A stretch of 64,000 nt of DNA from Chlorokybus atmophyticus (GCA_009103225.1 RHPI01003389.1:787162-851161), one strand, 5' to 3'. Positions 1,767-64,000 are shown, counted from the stretch's first letter. Made by a program: numbers and translations. Notes: a model not told the origin generated them from the sequence alone.

Positions 1767-8940
<7,174 letters not shown>

Positions 8941-26566: not shown

Positions 26567-26600
<34 letters not shown>

Positions 26601-30900: not shown

Positions 30901-33900
30901 GCACACGTCCAGCAGAGCGTTGCACACAACAACACCCCACCTCCCCCTACCCTGGTAAGAGATGTGTCAACCACAGCACAACAACCACGACAACAACCAC
31001 ACACAGCAAACAGCACTACACACCTCATCAAACGCGGCCAACGCAAAGTCCACGCCACCAGTAGCCTTGCACGCCGTCAACAATGCTGTCATCGCATAAT
31101 CGTCCGCAGCAAAACCCTCTGCTCGCATCTGCCTGTGTGAAGCGACCTGAGCGCGTGCATGTGCATGTGTGTACACATGTGTGTGCATACGCATGTACGT
31201 GCGCTTGTGCATGTGTACGTGTGTATGCAATCGCAAGCGCATGCGCATGTGCAGCATGTGAGTAAGCACATGTGTGCATATGCGCCTGTGTGCGCGTGTG
31301 TATGCCCATGGGCATGTGTATGCACATACGTGTGCGCGTGGCGTGGGTCTCTGGTAGTTCACACACGCACACAACGTACTTGTACGTGTCCACAACACGT
31401 TGAGGCACAGGCAGTCTCTGGTACGCTGTGAGCAGAGCGCTCCACTCGCCCGCGCTGCGAAGGCCGCCCGCATCACGCAGGTCTTGCACCACGCCATCAA
31501 CAAGCTCACCCTGTCGACGGCGTCATAGTGTCATTGCGTGAACATGTTGTGTCGTATGATTAGAACGCAGGTGCCTTACTGTAGAGTCTGCGTTGGCGCA
31601 GAGGACCAACAATGATGTGAGGGCGTGGTGCGAGATGGTTTGCACGCCCGACCGCTTGTGATGTTGCCATGTGTCGAGCGCCCACTTCACGTCAACAGCT
31701 GCACAGACGCGCGGATATTTACATATGTGCATGTGCGCACGTGTGTGTACATGTGTGCATGCGTGTGTGTGCACCGACAGACTCACACACACGCATGCGC
31801 ATGTGTGTAATTGTGTTCGCATTGGCAGTAAAACACACGGGCATATATGCATGCGGACACGCACACACGTGCACGAACAACTGTTGACGTCACAACCTTG
31901 ACAATACGTCGCCTGTCGCATTCCAACGACAGCATTACCTTGTGCTGCTGCAGTGTAGAGCGCCACGTACGTGCGTGCAGTGGGCACCATACCGCATTCC
32001 AACATCTCCGCAAAGAGGGCTTTGGCCTGGGTACTGACTCCATGAATTTGTGTTCTCCCTGCCAACGAGCAACAAACAAACGTGCGCTGCACCCGCTAAC
32101 CTGCTCGGATGCACCCGCCCGGCCCAGCGCCCCGAGCACAGTGTTGTACGTCACCACATCCGCAACCATCTGCATGGTTAATTGCATATGTGTGCATGTG
32201 CATGCGCGAGTGCGCACACGTGCGCGGGTATGTGTGTGGGTGTATGCATGCCTGTTCATTCGTGTGGCCATGCGTGTGCATTGCGTGCGCCTCTGTGTGT
32301 ATGTGTGTGTGCGCATTTGTTCAACGAGACAGTGCACACACTAACACTCATAAGCATAGCAAATCGTCTTTGTTGTACTTGGTACTCGCACGACAACAAG
32401 TACAACCATCGCACAACATCGCAAGCCTACCTCGGGCGCTTGCATCCGTCGAAATGTGTCCATGACATCCTCCGTCCTTCCCACCCTCGCATACGCCGTA
32501 ACGAGCGCGTTCCAGCACCCGATATCGCAACATCCCGCCTGTTGGGCTCGTGCAAACACGCTTTCGGCGGTGCTGACATCGCGCGCGCGGGCGGCCGCAG
32601 CCACGAGGGACGAATAAGCGGATCGGTCGGGTTTGAGATTGGGTTGTTGTTCGATCCAATTGAAGGCGCTTTGAGCTCCGGCCAAGTCACCCGCCTGATC
32701 ACGCGTATTTATGGCGCGTGAACACACACATACATAGGCTTGCGTGCATTGTTTGGACCATATTTGCCTAAATGTAGGGTTAAGCAGGGCTGTTGCTGTC
32801 TTATGCTTATTCTAAGCCTAGATACATGTATGCTTAAGCAGAATTTGAATGAATGAGCTTATATAGCCTGTTATGCTTATATGTATAGCCCTTGCTTGCC
32901 TGAGCTGCGGCAGATATCAACGCCGTCACCCGCTTCAACGCCACGCGCGCCGGCCACGTCGGCAACAAGGAGAGCAACCGCACACCCAAAGACACGTCAC
33001 CGTGTTGACCGCACAGCTTCAACACGTCCTGTGCGAGCACATACACATAAGCAACATTGACATACCATGCGACGCAAGCAACTGTCACTACTGCGCATGT
33101 GCAAGAAGAAAGAAGCTTCAGCACGTTCTGCGAGCACAAGAAAGCAGCATTGCCACAAGGTGCACACATGCGATGCAGCAAAACAGACACATAGCAAATG
33201 CCACTCTGCATGTCCCACCACAACAACAACATGCAGTGCACACGCAAGAAACGAACGAAAGAAAACAATCATCCGTTCAGCACACATGCAGACTTGTACG
33301 GTAACATAGATGGCAACGTCCCAACATAAGACAAAAGTTCAGAAGCTGGTATGGTCGTTGCACATAAATTGCCATTTGCAATGAGATAAGCAAACTGTAT
33401 GTAAGCGGGACGCAGCATACACGACACACACGCTTCATGACATGCAGAATGGTTTATGTGCTGGTTGGGAAGCTTGACTTGCATCCGGCTTGCCACTCAC
33501 TCTGTAGGGCAGAGAGAGTGGCAGTGAGCTGGCTCCGTGTGCAGCCACGTGGCGCTCCACCGCAGCTACGCAGTCCGCCGCCGCTCTCCTCCTCAACCCG
33601 GCCGACAGGGCGTCCGCAAGCTGATCGCTGGGAGAGACCTGCTGCTCCTGCTCCTGCTTCTGCTCCACCTCCTTCTCCACCGTCTTGGGCCTGACGGTGA
33701 TGGTGGCGGTGCGGCCTGGCCAGACCGGCCTGGCCACAGGCACAGCGGCAGCGGCGGCGGCAGGGGTGGGGCGGTGGACTTTGCCTCTCCTGAGCTGGTT
33801 CTCCTTCGCTTCACCCTGACGGCGACGCACAGGATGCAGCTGCGGCCGCCCTAGGGCCTCCCCGACCTGCACGCCGACGCCGACGCTGACCCCGACGCGG

Positions 33901-34611: not shown

Positions 34612-34889
34612 CTTGTGCGTAGGGCGCCTGGCCAGTACTCGTTGAAGGGGCTCTCCCCCTCATTGTATGGAAAAGGNNNNNNNNNNNNNNNNNNNNNNNN
34701 NNGGGGGAGGGGGCCGTGTGTGTGCATGGTGCTAAGATGTGTAGCGAGGCCTGTGGTCACCCTCTTCATCCTTGATGCTGAGCTGCAACTTCCTCCGCAT
34801 GGTACTGCACCTTGGTGCTTCCACTGTAAGTCATTTGGGTAATAAATGAGTGTGCCAAGCCGACTAGCAAGTGAGCGAGCAATTCTACA
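34612..34889 (+). mobile_element. Diverged solo-LTR fragment related to the LTR of the nested Gypsy element at 54516-54807
   Basis: Collinear shared blocks: cttgtgcgt(a/g)ggg(c/t)gcct, gtt(g/c)aaggggctctccc, gtag(c/a)gagg...ctgcacc, gccaagccg..agcaagt.ag. Ends in ...ACA. Contains a short N gap. Confidence 0.7.
34677..34702. other. Assembly gap (N run)
   Basis: Run of N flanked by purine/G-rich sequence. Confidence 0.99.
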
Positions 34890-38410: not shown

Positions 38411-41400
38411 ATGGAGGAGTTGCCGTCGTCGCCTGATGATGGCAGCAACGTGCGGGTGCTGGTGCGGCTACGGCCGCAGCCACCCGCTGCTCTGACGGGC
38501 GCAGCTCACCACGCCAAGGCGGTGGCTGTGGACACAGCTGGCAACAGGGTGCTTGTCACCGGCAAGGATGGCGCCGTCAAGACTTTTACCTTCGACGCCG
38601 TCGCTGATGACAATGTCTCTCAGGTGAGTACAACAGACCAGGTACGCTTGCTATCATCATGTGTTGAGCTTACGTTGTGTTGACTTGATGGCGTCCAGGC
38701 CAAGATGTTTGAGCTTGCGGGGCAATCTGCAGCTGACTCCTGCTTGCAAGGATACAACTGCTGCTTGTTTGCTTACGGGCAGACTGGTGCAGGCAAGACT
38801 TTCACTATGGAGGGTAAGCGTTAATGCGATCAAAGCTTGCAGTTGACTTCAGCTTTCAATCGACGCTTCCTAGATGACTATCTTCGTGCATGTATGCATG
38901 CATATGTGTGCGTGTGCGCACCCACACACGCATTGATATACATGCGCTCACACGCCCCCCNNNNNNNNNNNNNNNNNNNNNNNNNNNNNNNNNNNNNNNN
39001 NNNNNNNNNNNNNNNNNNNNNNNNNNNNNNNNNNNNNNNNNNNNNNNNNNNNNNNNNNNNNNNNNNNNNNNNNNNNNNNNNNNNNNNNNNNNNNNNNNNN
39101 NNNNNNNNNNNNNNNNNNNNNNNNNNNNNNNNNNNNNNNNNNNNNNNNNNNNNNNNNNNNNNNNNNNNNNNNNNNNNNNNNNNNNNNNNNNNNNNNNNNN
39201 NNNNNNNNNNNNNNNNNNNNNNNNNNNNNNNNNNNNNNNNNNNNNNNNNNNNNNNNNNNNNNNNNNNNNNNNNNNNNNNNNNNNNNNNNNNNNNNNNNNN
39301 NNNNNNCCCCGCTCATTCTATGTGTGCGCGTGCGTAAGTGGGCGTGTAAGTATGTACATGCTAGCTTACGTGTGTACAAGCATGTGTGCGCGTGCGCTAA
39401 GAGTTACGCCGCATCGCAGGTCCAGAGTCCACTTGGGACAATGAGGCGGTGGCAAAAGAGGGTGAAAGGGCGCTCGCAACCACCAGTCACGGGTTGATAC
39501 CGCGGGCGCTGGCGTACCTATTCACCCGCATACAACACGAGATATCACAGGTGAGAGATCTTACTTGTATGCTGGCCGCCATGTTGTTGTGTCAACACCT
39601 GCTACCAGCTGTTAATCTCGACCTTGTTGAACGTGTGCATGCAGACCAAAAGCGAGCTGAAGTACACGTGCTATGTGTCGTCGCTGCAATTTTATATGGA
39701 GGACCTTCACGACCTTTTGCAACCAGAGAACACCAACATAAGTGCGTCTGGACCTTGCCTTGTTGGTTGTGATTGTATCATGTGAGTTGTTGAGTGTTTG
39801 CGTTGTTCAACAGAGCTTAGAGAGGACAGGCACCAGCGTGTGCACATCGATGGCGTGAGCGAACTTGTTGTGAGCACAGCCGAGGCGGCCTATGCAGCAT
39901 TTCGCACAAGTAAGGCTGCTTGTACACACACATGTACGCACACATACGCAGATCACGAATAAAAGTGAGAGTAGAACTGAAAATGTATGCGCAGGTACGG
40001 CGAATAGGAAAGTGGGTTCTACAGACATGAATGCCGAGAGCAGTCGCAGCCACTCAGTGTTCACTTTGAAGCTGGAGTCCGAGATGACCGGTGCGAACGG
40101 CGTCACCAAGAAGCGCGCATCGCGGTTCCATTTCGTGGACCTTGCGGGGTCCGAGCAGCAGAAGCACAGCCACGCGCAGGGACACCTGCTCAGGGAAGCG
40201 GGGAAGATTAACAAGTCGCTCTCGGCACTCGGCAACGTGATCAAAGTAAGTAGTCACAACGCAAGTTGGCTGTGATGCAACAACAACAACAACGACAACA
40301 ACGACATTCTCACAACGTGCGTGGCACAGGCTCTAGTGGACAATGCACAAGGGAAGGACCGTCACGTGCCTTACAGAGACTCAAAGTTGACCCACATGTT
40401 GAAGGTGAGCTTTGCCACGTGTTGGGTCACATCGCACGTGCATGGAAGATCTCTCTCTTGCACATATGCTGATCTTGTCGTGTCGGTTGAAGGACTCTCT
40501 GGGCGGGAACTCCAAGTGCGTAATCGTGGCCAACATCGCCCCGGCTGCGCTGTACCTGGAGGAGACAATCAGCACACTGAAGTTCGCGCAGCGTGCCAAG
40601 GAGATGAAGAACGAAGCGGTTGTCAATGAGGACACGTTCGGCTCCGTACAAGCAATGGCGCTACAGATACGCCATCTCAACCTTGAACTCGCTGCCCTGA
40701 AACAAGGTTAGGAGTGTATTTGAAGCATATGTTGAGTCGATTACATTGCGTTCATGTTGTTTGTTGACAAAGTTGTTTTGTGTACACAGCATCCTCAGGA
40801 CCAGTTTCAACTACAGGCACCGGCCAAGCAGCGGGTATGTTGGGTTGTTGTGTCGGTGTTGTTTGGGATGTGACTATGTGTTCATGATTGACCCATACAT
40901 TCTGTTCAACAGAGGTTGTGGAGTTGAGAAGGAGAGTGGCAGCACTGCAGACGGCCCTCGTGAAGGTGACGAGCGAGAGTGACAGCGCAGAGAGGCGTGC
41001 TGTCAACGAGGCAAGACGCCTCACCGACCACGTGCAGGCTCTCGAGGAGAAGTGCTATCGCCTCGATCAAGCTCAGCAAGTACGCGAACTCATCACAAGC
41101 TTAATAACGATGTCATGCCTGATTGACTTACGTGTGGCGTGTGCAGGCGCAGAAGATGATACTCAAGTTCCGCGACAACATGATACGCAAGTTGGAGAGA
41201 GACAAGGAGAATGTCAATGGCAACGTGGATGCTGGTAGCAGAGATGCGCAGATAGCTGCCCTCCAGGCAGAGATATTGCAGCTGAGGAAGCAAGTTGAGT
41301 TTCATCCCGACATTGTGCAGTACAAAATGGACAACGACAGCCTCAAAGGTGAGCAGTGTTTGATGCAACACACCCAGCGATATGCAACGCACGGGCACGC

Positions 41401-47644: not shown

Positions 47645-48031
47645 AAGCACACCGTCCCGGTTGCCAAGAACTGCCTTGGTGCGTGAGGCACAATGTATGC
47701 TCTGGTGCGCTGCGCATGTCATTGCTGTGAGCTTGGCGATGGTGTGTTTGCTGCATCAGGTAGGACATAGCATCTCTGAGTTGCTTGTTCATTCACCTCA
47801 CTTAACAGTGTAACACATCATCCACTCATGCAAAGAACTGTGTATACAGCACCACCTATCGTAGTGGCTTGTTGACGCACAGTGTCACCCTCTTTGCTCA
47901 AGTGAGTGTGTCGCTTTCTGCATCAGATAGTGCAGACTGTATCCGGGGATACATCTCTGTGCATTCGTTATCACTGTCATGACATAGTGCGCACACAAGC
48001 ACTATTATGGTGAGTGGTAGCAGCATCAACA
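47645..48031 (+). repeat. Left terminal-repeat remnant (segments A + D) of the DNMT-Gypsy element
   Basis: 47645-47876 is about 92% identical by hand alignment to 62446-62674. It continues to GTGAGTGGTA...TCAACA at 48031; TCAACA is the inverse of the TGTTGA that opens the right repeat. Confidence 0.8.
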
Positions 48032-48087
48032 GACAGTAGAGCACAAACACTCTACCCCGCATACACTTTCACTTATAGACTAGCTGT

Positions 48088-49820
48088 ATGAGCAGGCCCA
48101 CCCCGTTCTCTCCAATAGACGAGGGTGACCTCAGCAGCCGGAGCCCAACCTCCAATCTCACCTACGAGCGGACTAGCGACGGGGGCAACGATCGCAGCAA
48201 CAGAGGCTCGCGTTCTGTCTCCGGCTTCACTCCATTTCGGCCTATTCCTCGCCATCGAGCTTCCCTACTATCATACGACAGCGACGACTATAAGATGGAG
48301 TCCTTCAGCTCAACCACATCCCTACGCTTCTTCGGACGTGCTGGCACCACCTCGCTGAACGAATTTATCATCAAATTCCATTCCAAAATGCGACGGCAAG
48401 CTCTGAAGAAGAAAGACTAGTTGAATCAGAATTCTTTCCACATTGGTACTCAGTACCCTGAAGCACACGATGTCTAGAAGTCTGTTGCTGAACTGCATCG
48501 AGTTAATGGCTATGGCGAGCTCGCCAGCACCATAGCATCTGTCCGTCAATGCAAAGTCCAGCAGCCGTCGCTCCACCTGCCACTCCAGCTGCAGTCATCG
48601 GCTTGTACATAGCTGCTATCGAGAGGGCAGAGGAGGAGGAGGAGCCTGAGTTGGTAATCGTCAACCTGACCCCTGCAGAGATTGAGACCAAAATGTCGCA
48701 CGGCGAGCTCAGATCCTGGACCGTTCTGCTGCTATCTTTGCAAAACAACGAGCTGCAGCCGTTGAGGTGGGCACGCCTCTACCTCTGCCAACACCTGGCT
48801 CTCGTGCGGGAAGCAGTGCTTTCACCCTCGAGTCAATTGCATTGCGTGCACCAGCCATTACTGTAAGTGCTGCCATCTCTGACTCTCCACTCATGGACTT
48901 ATACGCTGCACTTCGTCGCACCTTCCCACCTGAGACCTCCAGCAAAGTGGATGAGCTGAGACGGTCTCGACGCAAGCCCAACGAGGACCCTCTACGCCTG
49001 TACTCCAGACTGGAAGGGCTGTTGAAGGACACTGACTACAAGATCGTCAGATGAGGCTGCTGCAGTGGTGTATGTTAATGAGTTAAATGTGTTGAAGGTA
49101 TCACATGGGTGATGCTTGTATCCGGTCAGCTTGCCCTCCACACAGGAGTCCAGAATCGAAGGTATGGGCTGAGCACGTGAACTCCGGACTTAGCAAGACG
49201 GTCGAGCCAGGACGGAATCTGGACCAGATGCTGAGTGGAGCGTTGGAAGAAACCGCGTAGCTTTGTGGATACGTAAGCTTAGCAAGCGTGGCGTAGCTTG
49301 TTGGAAAGCTCTGGTTGTAAGCTAAACAGCGCAATTAAAAGCGCATAAAAAGGCTGAGTATTGTGCACGCGGTGCTTGCAAATGTAGACGTGTGTAGAAA
49401 CTGGCGGGGTATAAAACCCCTTGACTTGTATGGCATTAATAGCAGTAGCAGTCATGCTCTTGTGTTGATGTTGGCGTGTCACTTGCACGTGTGTATGTCA
49501 ACAAAATGCCACCCTAAGCGAGTCGACGCGCTTGACCCTGAGCTACAGCAGGCCCCTTGGCTACACGCTCAAGGAAGCCTTCGAGTCTGCACAAGCCATT
49601 GACAAGCGCTTGGTGTATGAGAAGGCAGTGCTGGACACCAACCGCAGTGCCACAATCACAATTTATAGCTAGCACAAGTATTGAGCCTCCTCGCCGCGAA
49701 TGTGGCCGGAACGCTCCACCAGCACGCGACAAAGGGCAACGGTCAGCTTATGCTGCTTTGCCTGCCCCTGTGCTGTGTCATCGCTTTGGACGGCATGGGC
49801 ACTACTAACAAGAGTGCACC
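48088..49820 (+). pseudogene. Retrotransposon gag pseudogene with CCHC zinc-knuckle remnant
   Basis: Motifs: SLRFFGRAGTTSLNEFIIKF; LRRSRRKPNEDPLRLYSRLEGLL; VVYVNKMPP; GYTLKEAFESAQAIDKRL; C-HR-F-GRHGHY*QEC knuckle at 49776-49818. Contains frameshifts and stops. Confidence 0.75.
49079..49490. mobile_element. 412-bp insertion into gag flanked by 11-bp direct repeats
   Basis: GTGTATGTTAA (49068-49078) and GTGTATGTCAA (49491-49501) flank the block. Removing it restores ...AAAVVYVNKMPP. Confidence 0.7.
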
Positions 49821-52357
49821 GAAGAGTACTCAACCCTGATCTGCGACTGCTGTCACAAGACGGGTCACTTGGAGTCAGTTTGCTGGCTTAAGTTCCCTGA
49901 GTTGATACCTGCCAACAGCTACAGCAAGAACTACTCTGGTGGCTACAACAGCAACAACGCTGGAGGCCACAACTCTGGTGACTACAACAGCAACAACACT
50001 GGAGGCCACAATGGCAACACCTCTGGTGGCTACCACACCGAAGGCCATAGCAATAACTACTACGCCAACGCTCGCACGGAAGAGCAAGGCTACAGGGGGG
50101 AAAATCGTCCTCCTCAGCGCAAGGGACTTGAAGAACATCCGCGCACTGCTGCTGTTGCCGCCAAGGCTCCAGCCAACCCGCCAATTGATGACCATATTGC
50201 TGCCTTTGTGGCGCGTATGGCACACTAGGAGGAAGACAAGGAGTAGGACTACCGCGCCTGCTACTCTGCCGGATGGGCACTGATGGCTCCGAAGCGCACA
50301 ACAGACACGAGCACTCCGTCACACATTTGACCATCCCGATGAGCACGAGGGGAAGCCGCAACATTGTCATCAGCTACCTCGTTTGAAGCCACTAGTGGTG
50401 CTGCATCAGCAGCAACATCCACACCGGCTACGACGTCGACTCCGTCACCGTCAGCAGCAACTACTCTAGTTGCACTAGGAGTGGGTACATCAGTGGGCAT
50501 CGTAACGCCAACACTGGTGAGCACAATGGCGACAGCCACTGCTGTTACCGACTCTGCACTAGTGGATCGCACCGGTCCCGCTTCAGCTGTAGGAGCATCT
50601 ATGTCAGCGAATGTCAAGACCACTCTTGCGCCCCTGACCGGCACTATCGCAACCACTGCCAGTGCCATCGTCGAGTCCGCTGCCACTGCAGCAACGCGTG
50701 CAGCTATGTGCCCGCCCTCGATGCCACTCAAGCTGTCGCGCGAGATAAGCAAGCTGAGCGCGTGTGGGAGACCAACATGCATGGAGCAGATCCCACTACC
50801 ACTGCTTTTGGGCGAAGAGGAGAGCGCACCACGCGCATTGCACGCAGTGATCGCTATTTCCCCCTACTTAAATATCACACCCTACCAGAGCAGACCTTGC
50901 AGCAACTGGAGGATGAAATCCTCTCTGGCTCGGCGCCTCCCATGCGAGACCGCGTCCTTGTGATCAGAACACCTGTTGTGCTAGAGATGGCCCTGCAGCT
51001 ATTTTAAACTCTGCATGACAACATGCAGACAGCGCCACGCCAGCCCGCACAAGTCCGTCACGAGCCTTTCGAGCCAAGTCCGCTGAATACGTATCAAGAC
51101 CTGCAACCCAACATGCAGCTGACATGCCTTTGGGTACCGACGAAGCACCGTGGAACTTCACTACTCCTCGGCTTCACGAGCGCTACGCCGCTACAGAACA
51201 AGCGTTCACCTGGCGACAGGACCAAACTGCAGCCATCAACGCACGAGCGCAAGCCCTTGCCGCTCGTGCTTCCGTTCTTCAACCAACAAGCGCTGGCCCA
51301 TTGTCCAGCACGATACCTCTCCGTCGACACCGACATTGACCAAGTGAGGGCGCTGGCCCAACAAATTCGAGGGGTGACCGCCCTGTTGCGACCCGCCTTG
51401 GTGGAAGAGATTGCCTAACGATCAACGAGATCCAAGGAGAGGCTACCTTACACCATAAAAGTGTACGCAACGGGATGAAACAAGCCTAGTTGAAGAACAG
51501 CAAGTTCGCACTGCCCTGTTGCGACAAGCAAGCATGCTACATTAACAAGAAGGCATCGGCCTGACACAGATGATGGGGATGCAAGAGGGTGGCACTGCAG
51601 CGCGAGCGAAACTAGTAACTTGGCTAGTCACCAATCACCCCGCAGTTCTTTGTTCGCGTTTGGCACCAGATTGTCATGGCTGGACGCCTTCCTTCGCTCG
51701 CTACGGCAAGCCTATGACGAGGTGGCCTCGGCAGTCACTGACACCTTAGAAAGAGCTCAAGAGGCCACACTGAGGTTGCCAGGAGTGGAAGCAGCGCGAC
51801 AACACAGACGCATCTGCTTTTTTATGAGCAGCATGTCCAACAGAGATCTACCTCATTGTGCGTGCATGAGCAACTGTGCAGGAAGTGGGGGTGATCGATG
51901 GCACATGGGCTGCTTACATGGCCGCGATCTGAAGGGTTCCCACCATTACCCACGACACAAAAGCGCCGCTCCAGCGGGCAGTGTATCTTTAGCCCATGCC
52001 TCGGAACCATTGCTGGGATGATGTGGTCAACAATCCAATAGCTATATGGAAGGTACACTGTTCAGGGAAGCGGCTCATACTGTACGCTGGACTTATGTGG
52101 AAGAACAGCCTGCACGGGAAGCAAGCTTAAAAACAGGTCCCCCAGGGTTTCCCCCACAGCCACTTGCCACGCCGCCAGGTGTGACCCCGGTCACACAGAG
52201 GCGCAATCCCCCTGCGCCACAACCAGGGCAGCCATAGGCAGCACCGCCAGCACCCAGGCCGCAGCGAGTATACCAACAGCCAAAACCAGGACGGTTCGGG
52301 CCACGCCGCGGACAAGGAGATTCTCAAGACCCAGCCGGTCGAGGGGCGCTTGCCGCA

Positions 52358-52900
52358 GTGCGCTCGACACCATCAGAGGAGTCTGCAGCAGCAGTCACCC
52401 CACACAGACGCTACCGACGGTTCAAGCGTCTGCGCATCAACGCCAATGCAGCCATGATCGCCAACAAAGGCAAGCATATCACCATCGACAGTCGAACACC
52501 CAAGTGCGTACTGCTGGACTCTGGAGTCCAGCCTGTCATTGAACGTTACCTCGTACGCGACCTCGGCACCACCAGCGCTGAGCTGATGCCCTGCCTATAC
52601 GTGCTCGACACAGCAATCGGCAGCCGCGACAAGGTGATTGGCATCACCAAGCAGGCCCTCTGCATTCGCTTGACAGGGTTGGACCCTTTCCACAGCACCG
52701 AGATCATACAGGAGTGTGTGGTCACCGACGCGGGATCTTTTCACGTGCTGCTGAGACAGGATATCAACTTTCCTGCTGGCATGGGGCTTAACTGGTGGAC
52801 AGAGAAGGCATGGTTTCATCCCCATTGAGATGAGGAGGATGGAGAGGTTCAGGGATACATGCCTATCGAGCTGGTGGCTTGTACTCGCTCTCACCAAAGG
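52358..52900 (+). pseudogene. Retroviral-type aspartic protease domain
   Basis: CVLLDSGVQPVI (D-S-G) and downstream SFHVLLRQD (DxLLG-like). Same reading frame as the DNMT. Confidence 0.7.
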
Positions 52901-53188
52901 TCAGCTGCAACAGCCACCTACAGGTTGGCTTTGGCAACCATTGACAGGTCAGCGGCGGTAGTTACCCACAACCTAGACCACGACGCTCCTATCCCATGCA
53001 ATGAGTCCCAGGAGGATGCCACCAAAGAAGTGGCCCAACAGCAACCATCTGAACGCCGTTGGCACGTACAAGTGGTCGCACATCTACTACTGACTAGACC
53101 ACAACTCACTGCACGATTCCCTCGCTACAAGGACCAAGCTGCGGTCCAGGAGCAATATCAAGTGGCCATTGAAGTAGTGTAGTTCTAC

Positions 53189-53851
53189 GTGTCTCGCCGA
53201 CAACAAGGCATCACTGTGTTGGAACTGTTTAAAGGTATAGGTAGTGGCCTCGCCGCTGTCCTCAACATCGGCGCGACGGTCACCAAGTACCTATACTGCA
53301 ACCATGATCCACACGCACGGATTGCCCTCAACCACCACTTGCGTCGCCTACACGAGCGCTACCCGCAGCAGCTGCCACTATCAGCACTGCACGGCAGTCT
53401 GAAGGCACTGCCACAGGACATCCGTTGGATCACTGAGGATCACCTCCTAGCGGTGGGCAACATCGACCTGCTAATAGCAGGATGGGAATGTTTAAGACAC
53501 TACAGAGCAGGCAGAGGCCAAGGACTCTTTGATCCTTGATTGCAACTGTTGTAAGAGCTGATGCGCGTCATCAAATTCCTGTAGAGCCACCCGACTTCCA
53601 GGCCTCTGGGGTATATCATCAAATACGTGCACTCCGAGAACGATAAGCGTCATCACGTGACCGACAGCTGTCAACATGTTTGCTTCTTGCTGAGTCATCC
53701 TCTTAAAATCAACATAGTGCATTATGAATCCCGTGCTCAACGTGTCCGCGCCAAATGGACCACCCTAACTACAGTGAAGGATTTCTTCGCTACTGTCACG
53801 TCCACGGGGCAGGCAAAGTCATTCTCTGTCCCTTACCTATGTGGTAAGTAA
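53189..53851 (+). pseudogene. Retrotransposon-encoded C5 DNA cytosine methyltransferase domain (degenerate, 3'-truncated)
   Basis: Motif I TVLELFKGIGSG (FxGxG, 53228-53242); motif IV IDLLIAGWEC with Cys at 53489-53491; motif V RAGRGQGLFDP*; motif VI remnant GYIIKYV (canonical ENV); motif VIII ESRAQRVRAKWT. All lie in one frame, with in-frame stops at 53537, 53552 and 53582. Confidence 0.88.
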
Positions 53852-54024
53852 GATGAGACCAAGTGGGGACCCACACTACGCAAGCGTGTGTAGTGCTTGT
53901 GGGTGTGCTCTCATGTAGGTCTGCTCTAGAGCATGTGCGGCCTTGAGCATGATGAACTACACAAGGCATGATGGCAAGCACAGGGCTGATCATAACCGAT
54001 GAGACATCATGTGATGTACGGAGA

Positions 54025-54205
54025 CATATGTGTGCATATGTCCGCATGTGTATGCATGTGTTTGCATATGTGTGCACATGTATGCATATGAGTGCATATG
54101 CGTGCATGAGAGGTATGTATTAGATGTATGCATGTATATGCATGCATGCGCATATGTATGCATATGCGCGCATATGTATGCATAAGGATGCATATGTATG
54201 CATGA
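54025..54205. repeat. (CATATG/TGCA/TG)-type alternating purine-pyrimidine microsatellite
   Basis: Continuous catatgtgtgcatatg...tatgcatg tract. Confidence 0.85.
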
Positions 54206-54216
54206 GTATGATGTTT

Positions 54217-54375
54217 TAGGCTGATGTGACCAGCCAAGGACGTTCACAACGTCCAAGGATGATGTGTGTGATGTCCTAGGCTGAGGTGACCAGCCTAGGG
54301 ACGTTTACAATGTCCGAGGCTGATGTGTGATCAGTCTTGGGCGTTGAAAGAGGTCCAAGGGCTGATGTGGCAGCC
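54217..54375 (+). repeat. 60-bp tandem repeat (~2.5 copies)
   Basis: taggctga(t/g)gtgaccagcc..ggacgtt.acaa.gtcc.agg.tgatgtgtg units start at 54217 and 54277, with a degenerate third copy. Confidence 0.85.
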
Positions 54376-54515
54376 CTAGACATGAGTTGTGGTCAACGCA
54401 GCCATGACAAGGCATGTAGCCTTGGATTTGGATGTTCTAGGTCGGAGCAGCAAAGAGAGGGTATATGAACGGCCTCAACATGTGTTGAGGCAGCTCAGCC
54501 TGTGCATACTCGACT

Positions 54516-57500
54516 CTTGTGCGTGGGGTGCCTAGTTTAGTTGTTCAAGGGGCTCTCCCTCTCATCCCATGTGGGGTGTGATGTCCGTGGCAGCTTTGCA
54601 CATGTGTGTGAGGTGTGCTTGAGTGTGTGAGTGTGTGGGAGTTGAGTAGAGAGGTTGGTGTCATCCTCTCCTTCCTTGGTGCGGTGCTGTGACTTTCTCT
54701 GCGAGGTGCTGCACCAGTGACGCTGGTAGGGCTTCCAGTAGTAAGTCCTTGTGCTTGTGCTTAAGTTTGCCAAGCCGCCCAGCAAGTAAGTGAGTGGTAT
54801 CGTTACATTGGACTCGGAGCTTGGATTCCAAGCCTTGCATGCTTGCCCATCAGCTCATGCACTTGCTGCACCGTACGTGCGTTGCATTCTTTGCTTGCAC
54901 GCACTACATGGCAGGGTTTTGAGCTGATTGTGCATGCTAGTTGGTGCGTCCAGCTGCATGCACACTTGCATGCATGGTGTGGGTCGTTCTACACGCTAAT
55001 TTGAGCATTTGTTGTGTGTTCTTGCTGCACATACACAGCATTACACACGCATTGGCTTGTTGCTGCACCAGCTGCGCGTGTGCGCGCATGTGCGCGCATG
55101 TGCGCTTGAGTGCATCTGATACAGGGACCTCACCTTGTGGTGTTGGCCCTAACCTTTGTGGCAATGGCTGAGCAAGAGCATACAGCAAGAGAGGAGGTAT
55201 CTTGGGGCAATGATGTTGCTAAGACCACCCGACAGCTTACCATTTTGGTTGCCACGTTGTGTGAGCAGGTAACAGAATTACAGCAACAACACGAGGCCAA
55301 CATAGCTCAATGGCAACGGTCAAGTGACATCGTTGACTGTGCAATCCCAAGTAAGGGACATGTTGGTGCATCTGTTGATGCAAGTGTACAAAACCACCGA
55401 GAGCGTAAGCGTAGCCGTGAAGCACAGCTCTGTGAAGCTGAAGCTGATGCTGCTCGGGGCCATGCTCTCATGTATGAGGGACATGAAGAGAGCAAGAAGC
55501 CATGTATACAACAGGGATTGCCAATGGCTAGCTGCTCTGTGGACGTTGATACGCAATGTGCTTTCAGTGACTTGATGTCATGCCTTCCCTAACCATGCAA
55601 TGTCGCTGTGTGGGAGAACGAGTTGGGTGTACAGGTAGATACTCAATTCATGCAGCACGACTGTGCGGGCAAGTGTGTCTTGCTCAATGCACATGTTGAC
55701 GAGTTGTCAAACATGCTCAAGCACTATGTGGATTGCAAGAGCAAGAGTGCGCACAACACAAGTGCATGCGTGGTTGTACCCAAGCGTCCTGGGTTGTGGA
55801 CCCGCTTTGTTAAAGGCATGCAGGTCCTGGGAGAGGTCAAGCTAGGTAAGGGGCAGATGCGTGTGTTGTATGACCCCCCTGCCATCCATGAGGTAAATAC
55901 TCTGGACTTGACTTGGTTGTTCAAGGCTTCTGTTGCGCATGTGCCGTGCATCCTGATGATGAACACGGCGACACCTGTCAACTTTGTGAGTGAATTTCTT
56001 GTGCGACGCATTCGTGTCAGCAAGTGTGATGAAACGGTTGTTGCCTTGACTAAGCTTGAGATCCCCGTGCGGGGAGTTGTATGCTTGTCTGTGCGTGTGC
56101 AAGGCTATCATGCTCACCTCAAGTTCTTGGTCATCCCAGTAGCGGTGCTCGGCGTGGATGTGATTGTTGGCAGCCACTGGGAGCAAGCATGTGGCTTGCG
56201 CACAGACGCGGACACAAAACTTTGCAGTGTATGCAAAGGTTGAGGTCGTGTGACCTTGCATGCAAATGGGCACAATGTTGCGCCCACTGTTAGCTCTGTT
56301 GATGATGCATCAAGTACAGATGTCTTATGTTCTTTGTTGAGTGCCATGCAGGTGAAGAGGGCTGTTCGCCATGGAGCTCAACCTCTTCTAGTGCTCGTCC
56401 GGCCAGTCGGCAACGACGACACTTTCACCTCAGTTGGTGAGACCGGTGGCAAGCCATCAAATACGGCCCTTGAAGGTCTGTTGTCTGAAGTTTCTGATGT
56501 GTTTCAAGCTGAACTGCCTGCATTGCCACTTGAGAGGGACGTCTGGCATACGATCCCTCTAGAGTCTGGTGCGCAGCCTCCGTTCAGACTGTGTGTATAG
56601 GCTGAGTCCAGCTGAGTATGCGGACAAGGAGGGGCTGATCAAGGCCTTGCTTGAGAAGGGATTGATTGAGCCAAGTAGCTCTCCTTTCAGAGCACCCATT
56701 CTTTTCGTACTTAAGAAGGACGGCAGGCTACGCATGTGCGTAGACTATAGGGCCTTGAACAAGCTGACCATCAAGAACAGGTATCCGCTGCCAAGGATAG
56801 ATGATTTGATTGATCAACTGAGCGGTGCCTCAGTGTTCAGCTCCTTGGATCTCATCAGTGGGTACCATCAATTCGGATCACACCGGAAGATGTGCCCAAG
56901 ACAGCGATCAGAACGCCTGTGGGACACTTTCAATACAAAGTGCTGCCTTTTGGTCTGACGAATGCGCCAGCCACCTTTCAAGCTATGATGAACCGTGTGT
57001 TTCACAAGCTGATCGGGAAGACAGTGCTTGTATTTTGATGATATACTTGTATTCAACAAGAATGCTAACATGCACGTCGCGCAAGTGCGCGAGGTGCTGG
57101 AAACGCTGCGTGCGCACCGGTTTTCTATGCTTACATGCCCAAGTGCGAGTTTGGCAAGAAGGAACTAGAGTTCCTCGGGCACACTGTGAGCAAGGAGGGC
57201 GTGCGCCCTGACCCAAGGAAGGTTGCCAAGGTCAAGGATTGGCCTAGTCCTAAGAATGTGCACGAGCTGCGCGCATGCTTAGACTTGAGCAACTACTTCC
57301 GCAAGTACATTCTTGGTTACTCATCGCGTGTTGCCCCTCTCACTACTCTGTTGCGTGACAAGGTCGTGTGGAGGTGGTCACATAGGCAGCAAGAAGCCTT
57401 TTGCGTCCATCAAAGAGACTTTGGTGATAGCGAGTGTGTTGCAGCTGCCGAACTTCACCAAGCCCTTTGAGGTAAACTGTGATGCGTCTGTTGAAGGCAC

Positions 57501-59100
57501 TGGTGTTGTGTTGCTCCAGAGTGGGCACCCCCTTGCTTATGGTAGGAAGAAGTTCTCTCCTGCTGAGAGAAACTATACAACAACTGAGCAAGAGTTGTTG
57601 GGGGTAGTCCATGCGCTACCAGAGTGGCGTTGCTATCTAGAGGGGGTGGAAGGCCGGTTTAGTGTGATCACGGACCACAACCCCCTTGTTTTCTTTCAGA
57701 CCCAACCAACCTTGTCGAGAAGACAAGCGAGGTGGGCTGAGTTCTTGTCCAGATTCAACTTTACTTGGGTTTACTGACCAGGGAGAGTGAATGTGGCAGA
57801 CCCTTTGAGCCGTTCGCCATTGCTGTTGGCAGTGACAACACGTGCACGTGCACGAAGCCAAGGGTGGGCACAAGCAAGTGATGCTAGTGCCAGTACTTTC
57901 GAGTTGCCATCTGTGCATGAGCAAGCTGTCAATGAGACACCACCGTGGCAACAGAGACCAGCGAGATGCCAACTGAGCTCGAGAGAGCAGACAGTGAAGC
58001 ACCGTTGGTAGTGCACGAGCCAAGTGGGGAGGACCTAATGGCCGTTGATGTGAAAGACATCAAACAGCGTTTACTTTGCTAGTGCTTATGCACATGGGTT
58101 GACACATGGGTTGTTGAGTTGCTGAAGCAGGCAGACGACAAGATCACTTGTCGCAAGGGCCTCTGGTACTGTGAGGGCAAGTTGATATTGCCAAATGCAC
58201 TCGGCTTGAGGCAAGAGTGTCTGTTTGAGGCACACAATGCCGTGTACAGTGGGCACATGGGAATGGCAAAGACCATCAAGCAGCTGCAGAGACAGTATTA
58301 GTGGCCGAGCTTGAGTGCTGATGCATCTAATTATGTCCGTGTTGTGACACTTGTCAAAGAGACAAGGCCTCGCACAGGAAGCCAGCAGGGTTGCTGAAGC
58401 CCTTGGCTATTCCCAACTCTCAATGGGAGAGTGTGAGCATGGATCTGATCACAGATCTACTCGTGACAAAGAAGGGACACAGTGCTGTCATTGTCTTTGT
58501 TGATCGCTTGATTAAGATGGTCAGATTTGACCCCTGTGCACAGACATGATGCGCAAGAGTTTGCGTTTGTCTTTGTGAACTCGGTGTTCAGATCACACGG
58601 TGTACCCAAAGAGTTGGTGTCTGACCGTGACCCCAAGTTTGTGAGCCATGTTTGGCAGGCTGTATGCCGGTACTTGGGGATTAAGCAGAGCTTGAGCACT
58701 ACTTACCATCCACAGAATGACGGACAGACGGAGCGCGTCAATCAGGTGTTGGAAGATGTGCTACGCCACTACACGTCACCCAGGTTCGATCATTGAGATG
58801 TGTACCTGCCACTTGCTGAGTTCGCTGTGAACAATGCATAGCATGAGTCGCTAAGAAGCACTCTTTTCTATCTAAACTACGGTCGCCATGTGTTGACACC
58901 CATGTCTCTGAATGTCGAGCCATTCAGCAAAGTGCCGATGGCTAGAGGCTTCACAGAGAGCATGCATGCCTCATTGGCACATGCAAAAGACTGCTTGAGA
59001 GCAGCACAAGACAGGCAAAAGATGTATGCCAACAGGCAACGTAGGCCTGGAGATGAGCTCCAAGTTGGAGATCAAGTGTTGTTGAGATCAAAAGATCATT
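54516..59100 (+). mobile_element. Nested decayed Ty3/Gypsy retrotransposon, 3'-truncated
   Basis: LTR-like segment ends GTGAGTGGTATCGTTACA at 54807, followed by the PBS-like TTGGACTCGGAGC. Gag/protease remnants at 55110-56243. [29 protein letters not shown]...LDLISGYHQ plus a frameshifted YFDD (~57030). RNase H FEVNCDAS...TTTEQELL...TDH (57460-57780). Integrase H-x6-H zinc motif, SMDLI and VSDRDPKF...HPQNDGQTERVN (58230-58750). The true 5' LTR start may lie further upstream (to ~53860). Confidence 0.9.
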
Positions 59101-59154
59101 CAACTCAGCTCTATGTGTGCATTGCATGAGTTCATGCAGTGCCAGCATAGATTG

Positions 59155-59495
59155 TGCTGTAGATATTAGCCTTGGGGTAGATACAATTGGCTAGGAGTAT
59201 TCTCCTGTATGGGGCTGCCTGGGGTATATAGGCCGCGGGACAGCCGCCAGAGGTCAGACTCGACTAGACGCTTAGACTAAATAGTCAGTAAATGCACTTA
59301 TGAGAGTTGAGGTCTCCCTGTTGCTGTGTGCGACTTGTACCTTTGTGCAAACTTTGTGTGTGCATGCCTACATGCAGTAGAGAGGGTCTGCATATGTGTG
59401 AGCAGCTATGTGATTGTTAGCTGCTGCATAGCTACACTGTGTGTGTAGAGTCTCAGCTCAGCACTTTGCTCTATACACAGCACTGATTGACAGCA
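59155..59495. mobile_element. Non-coding LTR-like segment at the junction between the nested and host elements
   Basis: Non-coding block starting TG with a TATA-like gtatata; it matches neither recognised LTR. Boundaries and TSD are unresolved. Confidence 0.35.
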
Positions 59496-59509
59496 GTCTT
59501 TGCCAACAA

Positions 59510-60030
59510 TTGCGCGGCCACTCAGCGAGTTACTGAGGAGGGACACAGAATTCCCAGTGGACGGAGGCACAGCAAGAGGCCTTCATGAAGCTAAAGCTCC
59601 AACTCACCACAGCTCTTAACCTTCAGCAACCTGACTACGACATGTCATTCATCCTGCACACAGATTGGAGCAAGCTCGGCGTGAGAGCAGTGCTCGTACA
59701 GCACGATGACAACAAGAAGGAGCGTAGTGTCGAATGCAAGCCGCAGCAACAACAGCGCTGAGGCCAACTACAGCAGCTACGAGGGGAGTGTCTCGCCGCA
59801 GTTTGGGCCATCTCCTCCTTCCGGCACTTCCGGTTTGGACGGCAATTCCAACCGATCACCGACCACCAACCACCGAATTGGCTGATGACCAACCAGCACC
59901 TGACAGGCAAGCTGGCACGGCGGGCACTACTGCTGCAGGAGTACAACTTCGAGGTGGAGCATCGGGTTGGCCTGTCCAACCAGGACGCAGACGGCCTTCG
60001 TCGCAACCCCCACCTTAGCACCAACGATAC
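59510..60030 (+). pseudogene. RT connection domain and RNase H of the DNMT-Gypsy element
   Basis: IARPLSELLRRDTEF/QWTEAQQEAFMKLK; FILHTDWSKLGVRAVLVQ; GECLAAVWAISSFRHF; ITDHQP; KLARRALLLQEYNFEVEHRVGLSNQDADGL. Confidence 0.9.
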
Positions 60031-60429
60031 GACAGGAGCCCGACACAAGTTGGGTCCTGCAGCCGCATCTCCAGGTATAGTGACCAGGATCGCTGTCGCT
60101 GCGCTACGTTCAGGACGCAAGACCCAGGCCATTGAGGCAGCAGCAGACAAGGACGTGCCATCTCTCGGGTCCATCGTTACCATCACAGACCCCTTATCAA
60201 GCGCTCGCCGCCGACCTTGAGGTGGACGATGAGGAGCTGGCACCCACCGACACACACACGACAGGACATCTAGCTGGACAAGCCATCCCTCGCACTTCCG
60301 CCCAGACAATTTCCAGCAGGCATGAGCGCGCGCAAGAAGGACCGCACCGGTCAAGGCACTCAGCGCTATCGCTGGGCCAATGACACGCTGTATCGACAGA
60401 TACAGAATGAGGACAAGGAGGTCCAAACA

Positions 60430-61540
60430 CCAGCTGCGCGAGAAGGCATCATCGCTGCCCTTCACACCGAGCTCGGACACTTCGGTGTTAAGCGCACGGC
60501 CAGTCTGGTCAAGGCTCAGTACTGGTGGTATAGGGTGCACAAACAGGTGCGCGAGTACGTCAGCGACTGCCAGCAGTGTGATATGGTCCGCGCGAGCCTA
60601 AACACGCGCAACGCCACCTTGCATCCCCTCCCCATCTCGGGACTGTTTTACCGCTGGGGACTGGACATCTTCGGGGACTTCGCCCTCAGCACGAGGCAAC
60701 CGCTACATCCTCGTCATGATCGAGCACTTCTCCAAGTGGGTGGAGCTTGTGCCCTTGCCCGACAAGGGCAGCGAGGGAGTAGCCCAAGCTTTCCTCTCCC
60801 ATGTACTCGGACGCTTCGGCAGTTGTGCTGAAGTCATCACCGACCAAGGTATGGAGTTCAGAGGAGCCTTTGACAAGCTCATGGACAGATGCTTCATTGA
60901 CCATTACCGTACTTCACACGACCATCCACAAGCCAATGGTCTTGCTGAGCATACCATGTAGACCATCAAGAAGGCTTTGCGCAAGTACGTCCTCGACTAC
61001 GAGAAGAGCACATGGGATGACCACCTCCCATGGGTAGCACTTGGGTTCCGGCCGTCCAAGCAGGCAGCACTACGGGAGTACAGCCCATATGCTGTTTGGA
61101 AGGCAGCCATTGCTCCCTTTCCGCGCACAGCAGAAGGTCGAAAGAGTGGTGGACAATCTCGACAACCCCGACGAGATGCTATATGATCTAACAGTGCGCG
61201 GCGCGCTGTTCGAGCACACTGTCCCCATGGTCTTCCACAACTTGCGCATCGCTCAGCACCGCGACACGCTTCGCTGCAAGCGTGTGCGCAACGGTTTCTA
61301 CAAGGAGCGGGAACGCCGCTTCCAGCCAGGAGACTTTGTCTACCGTATGGCGACCACACACGACACCCTCGACACCTCCGTTGGGCGCGCTGTTTGTAAG
61401 GTATTGAAGGTGTATCCCACAGGGGTACTGGACCTGCTGGGACAACAAGGAGAGCGCATGATGGACAACATGGTAAATTGCGCGCCCTATCATCTTCCCC
61501 ACGTTGCTGGCCTCGACAAGATCCAACACCCGCGACCGCT
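60430..61540 (+). pseudogene. DDE integrase of the DNMT-Gypsy element
   Basis: HHCC domain LHTELGHFGVKRT...YWW...CQQC; catalytic WGLDIFG, ITDQGMEF and HPQANGLAE; downstream LFGRQPLLP. Contains frameshifts. Confidence 0.9.
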
Positions 61541-61553
61541 GCGAAGCACCCAC

Positions 61554-61688
61554 TGCGAGAAATGTGGCTATGCCGACAACGACCTGGTGATGCTGTTATG
61601 TGAAGGCTGCAACCAAGGCATGCACTGTTACTGCCTTGACCCTCCATTTGACAAGGTGCCACTGTGGGAGTATTGGTGCGATGACTGC
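61554..61688 (+). CDS. PHD finger (C4-H-C3) at the C-terminus of the retrotransposon pol remnant
   Basis: CEKCGYADNDLVMLLCEGCNQGMHCYCLDPPFDKVPLWEYWCDDC retains all eight Zn ligands and the L.PP...VP...W.C signature, within ORF 61041-61718. Confidence 0.92.
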
Positions 61689-61760
61689 CGCATCAACGGT
61701 CCCCCACACAGTCGGTAGGAGCCGAGTCCTGGAGCAGGAGGCTACCCCAGAACCTCAAGC

Positions 61761-61797
61761 AGGGGGGGGGGGGGGGGGGGNGGGGGGGGGGGGGGGG
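61761..61797 (+). promoter_or_regulatory. Polypurine tract (poly-G) preceding the 3' LTR
   Basis: A followed by ~36 G (one N), two bases before TGTTGA at 61800. Confidence 0.7.
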
Positions 61798-61799
61798 CT

Positions 61800-62898
61800 T
61801 GTTGATTGTATGTACTACAGCACAGTAGGTACCGTAAGGAGGAGAGCGTCACAAGCTCTACTACTGATCAGATCCTCACATAGGTTCATCCATGAGCCTA
61901 TGCCTATGTCTGGGGGGTTAACTTTGTTTGTGTTGCTCTAATGCTGCGCGTAGCACCAGCATGCCCACGGCATGGGCACTCGTCTGCAGTGTGCTCAAGA
62001 CGGCGTGACCCTCGAGTATGGCAGGCACGAAAGCTGTCATGCCAAATACCCTCGCATGCCAGTCCTCCTCGAGCATGCCTACATCCAGCCCCAAGCTTGG
62101 GCTACCAACATGAAGACCGCGCGCGACTCAGCCTACTGCTAGCTATTTTGTACTTCATATAACATGTAGCTAGGGCTACTCTATAGACCTCTCTGTAGGA
62201 ACCGCGCGTAGCTGATCAGTTGGGAATCCGTTATCAGCTCATGTGCTATATCAAGTCTTAGGGGACTTCCGTAGTAGCATACGGCCTCAATGTGACTGTT
62301 GGCTTAGTGCCCGCGTGGCATTGCACAATCATAATTTTACATGTATAAGTAGGAAGTCATGTCACTAGACTTGCTGGTGACACTGTGAGTGAGTACTAAG
62401 GGTAAAGACACTGACTTTAGGAGCTTGTGAAGCGACTTGAACTAAAAGCACACCGTCCCGGTTGCCAAAAATTACCTTACTGCGTGAGACACAGTGTATG
62501 CTCTGGTGCGCTGCGCTTGTCATTGCTGTGAGCTTGGCGAGGGTGTGTTTGCTGCATCAGTCACAACATAGCATCTCTGAGTTGCTTGTTTATTCACCTC
62601 ACTTGACAGTGTAACACATCCACTCATGCAAAGAACTGTGTATACAGCACTACCTATCGTAGTGGCTTGTTGACTGTGTATACTACAGCACAGTAGGTAC
62701 AGTAAGGAGGAGAGCGTCACCAGCTCTATTACTGATCAGATCCTCACATAGGTTTATCCCTGAGCCTATGCCTATGTCTGGTTGGTTGTCTTTGTTTGTG
62801 TTGCTCTAATGCTGCACGTAGCACCAGCATGCCCACGGCATGGGCACTCGTCTGCAGTGTGTCCGAGACGGCGTGACCCTCGACCATGGCAGGCACGA
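61800..62898 (+). repeat. Right terminal-repeat complex B1-C-A2-B2
   Basis: 61800-62030 (B1) is repeated at 62668-62898 (B2). 62446-62674 (A2) repeats 47645-47876 (A1). Confidence 0.9.
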
Positions 62899-64000
62899 CA
62901 GGAAAGAGGCGCAAGTATGATGATCATTATAGACCATGATCAAGTGCCCTTGGCCATGGAGACATGTAGCTGATTGGAAGAGCCCTTTACGGAGCTGATT
63001 TAGATAATGCGAAACACACTAGTGACGTGGGTTGGAGGGCAGGTTGTGCGCTTAACGACGCACTTGCGCTTCCGCACACACATGCCACCTCAACACTAAC
63101 ATGCAGTGGCCATGGCCATTGGCCAATGCGACATTGGCAACTCAGTACGATGCATTCGCTACTTAACTTCATGTAGCGCCGCGCCAACCTTGTTGGAAGT
63201 TGTGGCCTCGCGGTCCCGTGGCCTGTCGTATAATACCGTGGACTCCGTTGTTGTGCCTGATGTAGTACATAAACTCTGCGCGTGTGGCCCGCCCGTCGAG
63301 TAACGACCCGCCCCGTGTATGTGCTCGCATGCACCGCATGCATGCACGCTCCCACGAGAAAGCTCGTGGGAGCGTGCATGCATGTGCATGCGTGCGCGCG
63401 TGTGTGTGAGTGTGCATGCGCTCGCATCACCAACTATCAATATGCAGGTGCGCGTGTGTGCACCTTCAAGTTTGTCCCCTGAGCGGAGACGGTTGCCCCC
63501 GCTTGCGGTATGCTGTTCAGTTCAGCTGGCTCATTCTCCACGCAAGCCACGTATACCCACAACTGCGTGCATCTTGTACTCCCAACATGTCATATGAAGC
63601 AGCAGACATCACACACAGGATGAACAATAGGTTCTTGTTATCTACAGATTACACAACAGACCTGTAAGCTACGCAGGGAGCGCAAGCGCTTACCTAACTC
63701 TAATCAGTGAGGCCCCTGCTTAGAAGCTATACTCTCTCATGCTAATGCTGCTTTATATCTACCAACATCGCTTGCTGCTGGGCGAGAGAGAAGAGGACAG
63801 ACAAGAGAGAGAGAGAGAGTCTGTCACACACACACGTGGGTGTGTGCTTTTGTGCGCGCGCGCACGTGCAGCACGCCGCTGCATGTCCACCTAACCTGCG
63901 CAGTGGTGATCACTACAGGTGATCTGCTTCGACCTTTAATCGGATGCGCGCGTCGGAGGCCACTCGTGGCCACAAAGGCAACGCGTACCCGTGTACGCGT

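Follow-up and report, generated by a model that had tools for sequence, protein, structure and literature searches.

Remnant of a probable Ty3/Gypsy-type retroelement carrying a DNMT3-like methyltransferase domain in Chlorokybus atmophyticus

The protease-methyltransferase reading frame

We analyzed a 64,000-nucleotide stretch of the Chlorokybus atmophyticus genome (GCA_009103225.1 RHPI01003389.1:787162-851161), referred to here as the window, with positions counted from its first letter. The subject of this work is a plus-strand reading frame at 52358-53851 in which a retroelement-type protease is followed by a C5 DNA cytosine methyltransferase (DNMT) domain. The segment translates as a single frame that terminates at 53849 and contains internal stops at 52826, 53180, 53537, 53552, and 53582. 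The internal stops are exactly the five reported in a first-pass annotation of the same DNA, and every motif string quoted there could be located in the translation. On the plus strand, the protease string LLDSG lies at 52511-52525, and the DNMT strings are ELFKGIG (motif I, 53222-53242), LLIAGWEC (motif IV, 53468-53491), the motif VI remnant IIKYV within GYIIKYV (53609-53629), and SRAQRVR (motif VIII) within SRAQRVRAKWTTL (53729-53767). Approximately 18 stops would be expected in 497 codons, compared to the 5 that were seen (Poisson p ~2e-4), indicating that the openness of the frame is beyond chance. The frame is also nearly open upstream to ~50300, with 14 stops in 1184 codons when the final stop is counted; the remaining five frames of 50300-53851 contain 37 to 56 stops per ~1183 codons. 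The 497-aa translation, with X placed at the stops, and its separate pieces were used as queries in the database searches.

The DNMT3-like domain spans 53198-53806 (+), contains the stops at 53537, 53552, and 53582, and comprises the N-terminal two-thirds of a methyltransferase only. No match to the 497-aa translation was obtained in a word-indexed protein search. An exhaustive HMMER search with the stop-free 118-aa piece (53183-53536) retrieved 563 representative proteins at E<=1e-3, 181 of them at E<=1e-10, with a best identity of 49%. When PDB sequences were searched with phmmer, the 29 best matches were all DNMT3A, DNMT3B, or DNMT3C (best, 9e-5), and motifs I, IV, VI, and VIII were aligned. 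A family DNMT profile (profile A2; length, 331) was built from 15 full domains of relatives; in PDB it matched DNMT3A at 3.9e-24, followed by plant DRM2 (~1e-9) and M.HhaI (~2e-8), and the DNMT3A match settles the fold. Against the six-frame translation of the window, the same profile gave a single match, at 53198-53806, with 176 bits over profile positions 2-210 of 331, compared to ~25 bits for the window domain against DNMT3A with phmmer. Beyond profile position 210, the frame continues over 53807-53851 (+) to its end at the left breakpoint of the element. By both phmmer and the profile comparison, the nearest characterized relatives are DNMT3 enzymes, and these results indicate that the window domain is the remnant of a genuine DNMT3-type C5 methyltransferase.

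The retropepsin-like aspartic protease occupies 52439-52816 (+), with LLDSG as its active site and the stop at 52826 after it. Its C-terminal 'LLG.D' motif has decayed to VLLRQD (52745-52762). Seven related proteins (P0012, P0039, P0028, P0019, P0077, P0110, and P0024) have a homologous stretch ahead of their DNMT, and Pfam assigned that stretch in P0024 and P0110 to gag-asp_proteas and Asp_protease/Asp_protease_2. The alignment of these protease stretches (alignment A1) shows no variation at the D and G of D(T/S)G and has a conserved YD(V/L)LLG motif; in PDB, the corresponding profile matched retroviral-like aspartic protease 1, ApRick, and DDI1 best (E=0.003). The linker between protease and methyltransferase (52817-53197, +) is in the same frame, includes the stop at 53180, and falls inside a local alignment that pairs P0012 residues 1019-1473 with window positions 52493-53767.

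Upstream of the protease, the frame continues over 50300-52438 (+) with 8 stops and no recognizable domain, as judged from stop counts and Pfam, and is presumed to be gag or spacer. P0012 likewise has ~1000 aa without a Pfam match ahead of its protease. Two gag-type CCHC zinc knuckles were found at 49776-49883 (+) in the translation, in a different frame from the protease and DNMT. The knuckle at 49842-49883 is an intact CX2CX4HX4C, and that at 49776-49805 has degenerated, with a C-to-F change and a stop. In the relatives P0110 and P0024, zf-CCHC is located upstream of the protease. Just past the window knuckles, tandem 24- and 39-bp repeats (49918-50037, +) encode a Gly/Asn/Ser/Tyr-rich low-complexity stretch, presumed to be gag.

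Relatives of the element and the state of its methyltransferase motifs

We collected 204 related proteins, and two domain orders were recognized among them by Pfam. In type 1 (65 proteins), the order is RVT_1, RT_RNaseH, DNA_methylase, Integrase_H2C2, rve, and PHD, as in P0003, P0025, P0038, and P0054. In type 2 (31 proteins, counted by adjacency of protease and DNMT or of DNMT and reverse transcriptase [RT]), zf-CCHC and the aspartic protease are followed by DNA_methylase, RVT_1, RT_RNaseH, and the integrase. Most of the other proteins are fragments with the DNMT alone. The type 2 order is seen in P0110, an uninterrupted open reading frame (ORF) of 2188 aa on a metagenome contig, which carries zf-CCHC, Asp_protease, DNA_methylase, RVT_1, RT_RNaseH, Integrase_H2C2, and rve. 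P0024 has zf-CCHC, gag-asp_proteas, and DNA_methylase; P0013 has DNA_methylase and then RVT_1; and on contig L001 a DNMT-bearing ORF1 precedes an ORF2 that encodes RT, RNase H, and integrase. The relatives score above the Pfam DNA_methylase cut-off (46.1 bits for P0110, 45.5 for P0012, and 41.5 for P0014), and the family consensus retains motifs I, IV, VI, and VIII.

The protease (52439-52816) and DNMT (53198-53770) of the window lie in one frame and are colinear with P0110 and P0012. The claim of the first-pass annotation that a Gypsy polyprotein has a DNMT fused in frame after its protease is thus borne out by intact relatives, in P0110 within a single ORF, and none of the outcomes that it had named as fatal was observed: the family matches the DNA_methylase model, its consensus keeps motifs IV, VI, and VIII, and the domain is in frame with the protease. 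The window DNMT scored 181 bits against a profile of the protease-DNMT (type 2) subgroup versus 165 bits against that of the type 1 subgroup, in which the DNMT stands between RNase H and integrase. By domain order and profile score, the window element is assigned to type 2.

The identity of the DNMT to the window domain was 33 to 49% across the collected relatives and 34 to 42% for Closterium proteins. Among the DNMT relatives, only the Closterium proteins carry species names; the others were found in metagenomes or in assemblies that lack annotation. Scanning metagenomes for close copies yielded a single match, with 42% identity, and no relative was near enough to represent the same family at the DNA level. 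The Closterium and metagenome Gypsy-DNMT polyproteins (e.g., P0110, P0012, P0024, P0003, and P0180) resemble the window element in the protease-DNMT adjacency of the type 2 subgroup, in the W-E-C motif, and, in many of them, in a PHD finger after the integrase. They differ in that about twice as many have the DNMT located after RNase H and before the integrase.

The motifs of the window copy were compared with those of the family and of DNMT3A. In motif I, the window reads F-K-G-I-G, the near-invariant first glycine of the family FGG having changed to K. In motif IV, the catalytic Cys, which is invariant in the family, is kept and is preceded by Glu instead of Pro (W-E-C); when the profile is aligned to DNMT3A, this Glu stands opposite the Pro of the P-C dipeptide. 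Motif VI reads K-Y-V, and the ENV glutamate is lost (E to K) though it is invariant in the family alignment. The RxR of motif VIII is kept, with SRAQRVRAKW (53729-53758) aligning to AHRLRxxW of the family and AHRARYFW of DNMT3A. All 15 sequences of the family alignment share the catalytic Cys, the ENV Glu, and the RxR arginines. The first-pass annotation had singled out W-E-C as notable in this copy. The motif is indeed present, but it is the commonest state in the family, with 81 of 160 scorable relatives, and 21 of 28 of type 2, having W-E-C; W-P-C was found in 40 of the 160, and the others have a different residue before Cys. Annotated Closterium proteins read AGWECQG. W-E-C is therefore a lineage trait rather than a product of decay.

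The mammalian enzymes DNMT3A, DNMT3B, and DNMT3C (PDB 6w89, 2qrv, and 8tci) align in motifs I, IV, VI, and VIII and in a C-terminal LGR-type motif. In contrast to the Gypsy-DNMT family, which mostly has E-C, they have P-C in motif IV, and they are without the ~40-residue insert that the family has between motifs I and IV. They also have no retroelement context, and their PWWP and ADD domains are absent from the window element.

The window copy is extensively decayed. No further DNMT fragment representing the rest of the target-recognition region or motifs IX and X was found in any frame of the 64-kb window. Of 45 invariant or near-invariant columns of the family alignment, 13 are missing in the window copy and 32 are covered; 9 of these 32 are changed, including the motif I glycine, the serine that follows the catalytic Cys, and the glutamate of ENV. 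Because of the five stops, the missing motifs IX and X, and the loss of the motif VI glutamate and the motif I glycine, this truncated copy is dead and incapable of activity.

Layout of the element and its surroundings

Split direct repeats bound the element. Repeat A1 (47645-47876, +), at the 5' boundary, is ~92% identical to repeat A2, and repeat B1 (61796-62033, +) is 92% identical to repeat B2. Repeats A2 (62446-62674) and B2 (62664-62901) form a composite terminal repeat (62446-62901, +) at the 3' boundary, in which they overlap by the 11 nt GGCTTGTTGAC. The outer element thus extends over 47645-62901 in the arrangement A1 ... B1-A2-B2. A run of 35 G with one N (61762-61797, +) lies directly upstream of B1, in the position of a polypurine tract, and may have had that function; the run with its N was probably also a hard spot for the assembler. 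The decay of the element carries no special deamination-type signature: mismatches in the two repeat pairs comprise 11 transitions and 5 transversions and 11 and 8, respectively, and the CpG observed/expected ratio of 0.72-0.74, versus 0.78 for the window, is likewise unremarkable. A search for split repeats in the contigs of relatives was uninformative, the contigs being probably short or collapsed.

The 3' part of the outer element encodes RNase H and integrase, in line with the order RT, RNase H, and integrase (DDE) in intact relatives. The RNase H (59555-60046, +; Pfam RT_RNaseH_2 and RT_RNaseH) is 52% identical to L001 ORF2 and 41% identical to P0110. The frameshifted integrase (60256-61100, +; Pfam Integrase_H2C2 and rve), with an H2C2 zinc motif at ~60463-60585 and a DDE core at ~60695-60994, is 39-60% identical to L001 ORF2 and 39-54% identical to P0110. 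A PHD finger (61554-61691, +; Pfam PHD, E=9.6e-7) forms the C terminus of the integrase ORF. The same arrangement of integrase and PHD occurs in P0003 and P0054, and integrase-PHD or PHD-integrase occurs in many DNMT-bearing relatives. By analogy with the chromodomain of chromoviruses, the PHD finger may be a chromatin-targeting module.

Between the two parts, Pfam, identity, and repeat searches delimited a foreign segment of 5.7 kb (53852-59554, +) in place of ~1.5 kb of the element. The RT of the element itself and the C terminus of its DNMT, which together amount to ~480 aa in P0110, are missing. The foreign segment contains a frameshifted Gypsy pol on the plus strand with RT (56599-57401), RNase H (57400-57850), and integrase (58209-59015), recognized by Pfam as RVT_1, RT_RNaseH, Integrase_H2C2, and rve. 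This inner pol is only 22-36% identical to type 2 relatives. L001 ORF2 shows 39-60% identity to 59555-61100, with values of 52-60% at 59.6-61.0 kb, versus 31-36% to the inner pol, and P0110 shows the same pattern, so that the pol at 56.6-59.0 kb belongs to a different, more distant Gypsy lineage and not to the element itself. No long terminal repeats (LTRs) or flanking repeats were found around the inner pol. The tandem repeat finder also reported an array with a 10-bp period at 54025-54210 inside the foreign segment. Imperfect short-period repeats rich in CA/TG and CATG are abundant in introns and intergenic DNA throughout the window (e.g., 54025-54210 with period 10, 13.8-14.1 kb, 30.1-30.4 kb, and 31.0-32.4 kb) and, when translated, give runs of H, T, A, C, and V.

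The layout was compared with the published description of KnitGypsy-Dnmt3 from Klebsormidium nitens (de Mendoza et al. 2018), which has Gypsy domains, a Dnmt3 in pol, DIRS-like repeats in the order A-coding-B-A-B, and no introns (PMC5890265). The window element shares the Gypsy domain set, the absence of introns, and the Dnmt3-type DNMT within the polyprotein, and it shares the A-coding-B-A-B layout with an extra 412 bp between B1 and A2. Motif X is poorly conserved in KnitGypsy-Dnmt3 (PMC5890265), in agreement with which the family consensus reads LGRxMD in the motif X region. Unlike the published copies, which are under purifying selection, the window copy is a dead, truncated one. Each of the three features by which the charophyte family was described was found here, and the window element is accordingly placed in that known class.

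The surrounding genes are eukaryotic and plant-like. They include an intron-split short-chain dehydrogenase gene (24649-26885, +) with adh_short at the 5' exon and adh_short_C2 at the 3' exon, a PPR-repeat gene (28378-32092, -), and an AAA-ATPase-like exon (5432-6418, -) that had no Pfam match and whose best database match was a Hibiscus protein with 56% identity over 43% of the query. No tRNA or Rfam matches were found in the window. Runs of N at 20873 (1), 34677-34702 (26), 38961-39306 (346), and 61781 (1) indicate a scaffolded draft assembly as the source of the window.

Origin, ancestral role, and breadth of the family

We consider it probable, at roughly 0.85, that the protease-DNMT frame represents the 5' half of one dead Ty3/Gypsy-type copy carrying a DNMT3-derived domain, bounded by split repeats and with its middle replaced, and that the most likely role of the ancestral domain was methylation of cDNA or the insertion site. 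The split in identity of L001 and P0110 between the 3' part and the inner pol argues for one type 2 element with a replaced middle. The ancestral polyprotein would have consisted of gag (CCHC), aspartic protease, DNMT3-derived C5 methyltransferase, RT, RNase H, and integrase, possibly with PHD, and the C terminus of the DNMT and the RT would later have been replaced by the 5.7 kb holding an unrelated Gypsy pol fragment. The gap may have arisen by nested insertion or by recombination. Given its position inside the polyprotein, the methyltransferase would have been translated together with protease, RT, and integrase. Its release by the protease would presumably have taken place inside or close to the particle in which cDNA is synthesized, which would make the element's own new cDNA or its insertion site the most likely target of any catalytic activity. 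The authors of the 2018 study proposed that new cDNA is methylated to mimic host DNA or to shape insertion-site chromatin (PMC5890265).

Several observations weigh against this interpretation. With the translation of 52358-53851 alone, the match to Pfam DNA_methylase (PF00145) fell below threshold, at 11.1 bits versus a cut-off of 22 (E=0.27) and in the motif IV region only. The gag zinc knuckles were recognized only by eye and in another frame, and a Pfam scan of 47.9-52.4 kb returned nothing, zinc knuckles included. No classical LTR pair, primer-binding site, or target-site duplication was recognized at the outer element. The 412 bp of unique sequence between B1 and A2 (62034-62445) is not predicted by the A-coding-B-A-B layout and reflects either a longer A or B in intact copies or an insertion. 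The PHD finger on the window integrase is absent from P0110. No relative with more than 50% identity was found in the word-indexed search, the representative searches, or the metagenome scan, and the family consensus therefore rests on distant members. Gypsy-borne domains are not known to be catalytically active. Finally, a single element with an internal replacement is indistinguishable from a head-to-tail pair of truncated copies belonging to the same family, one with A1, gag, protease, and DNMT (47645-53851) and the other with RNase H, integrase, PHD, and B1-A2-B2 (59555-62901), with a fragment of another Gypsy element between them.

This two-copy arrangement is unlikely, though it is the likeliest of the alternatives. 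The inner segment has no LTRs or duplications that would identify it as a clean nested insertion, the absence of ~1.5 kb of the element is more than mere interruption would cause, and the 92% identity of A1 and A2 suits sister copies as well as it suits the ends of one copy. However, the orientation, order, and family affinity of both parts fit one element exactly, and the succession A1 ... B1-A2-B2 matches the published layout of a whole element.

The split direct repeats also raise the question whether the element is a tyrosine-recombinase retrotransposon of the DIRS type that carries a Dnmt3, as SymbioDIRS-Dnmt3 of the dinoflagellate Symbiodinium does, given that the A-coding-B-A-B arrangement is a hallmark of DIRS, PAT, and Ngaro elements. 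SymbioDIRS-Dnmt3 resembles the window element in having a retroelement-borne Dnmt3 in pol and split direct repeats, but it belongs to the DIRS class, has a tyrosine recombinase, and represents an independent capture, whereas the window element has a DDE integrase and Gypsy RT and RNase H. No match to Phage_integrase was found in the scanned plus-strand frames of 47.9-63 kb or on the minus strand of 52-54 kb, where a Pfam scan gave no match at all. Integrase_H2C2, rve, and a Gypsy-type RT_RNaseH were recognized in the 3' part of the element and in every long relative, and the published charophyte family pairs these same repeats with Gypsy domains. With no tyrosine recombinase in the frames scanned, a DIRS identity was rejected as highly improbable. 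Still less credible is a host DNMT3 pseudogene adjoining transposon debris by chance, which would suit the nearest solved structures (DNMT3A/B/C) and the weak Pfam match of the window alone, as the domain is in frame and colinear with a retroelement protease-DNMT unit, scores 176 bits against the retroelement family profile versus ~25 bits against DNMT3A, and has the W-E-C and the long motif I-IV insert common to the retroelement family.

The single-copy interpretation makes the window locus an additional dead member of a class that was described in 2018 in a charophyte alga, and it introduces no new principle. The first-pass annotation took this class to methylate CG de novo in dinoflagellates and charophytes alike. 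This holds for the dinoflagellate DIRS-type Dnmt3 domains, the only ones for which de novo CG methylation was observed in yeast; expressed in yeast, the Gypsy-borne DNMT of Klebsormidium produced no methylation, a result that its authors call inconclusive (PMC5890265). The description of the class as rare is doubtful as well, because 563 representative clusters were retrieved.

What is new comes from the relatives and not from the window: the Gypsy-DNMT3 clade is far larger than the one reported charophyte family, with 563 clusters, it occurs in Closterium, it has two domain orders, and its motif IV mostly has E-C in place of P-C. A broader and much more tentative view, which we hold to be doubtful, is that the window copy is a relic within a large, essentially undescribed Gypsy radiation in Closterium genomes and in assemblies from metagenomes and public reads, with the DNMT in either of two pol positions (between protease and RT or between RNase H and integrase) and with W-E-C in about half of the members while Cys, ENV, and RxR are kept, and that the altered motif could change substrate or chemistry. 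If this is true, the altered motif IV could mean substrates such as nascent cDNA, an RNA:DNA hybrid, or RNA, and a change in substrate or chemistry would explain why the sole tested Gypsy-borne DNMT gave no methylation in yeast. Transposons that bear the silencing enzyme of their own hosts are an odd twist in the conflict between transposon and host, and the findings from the relatives make the question of what the DNMT targets more concretely testable.

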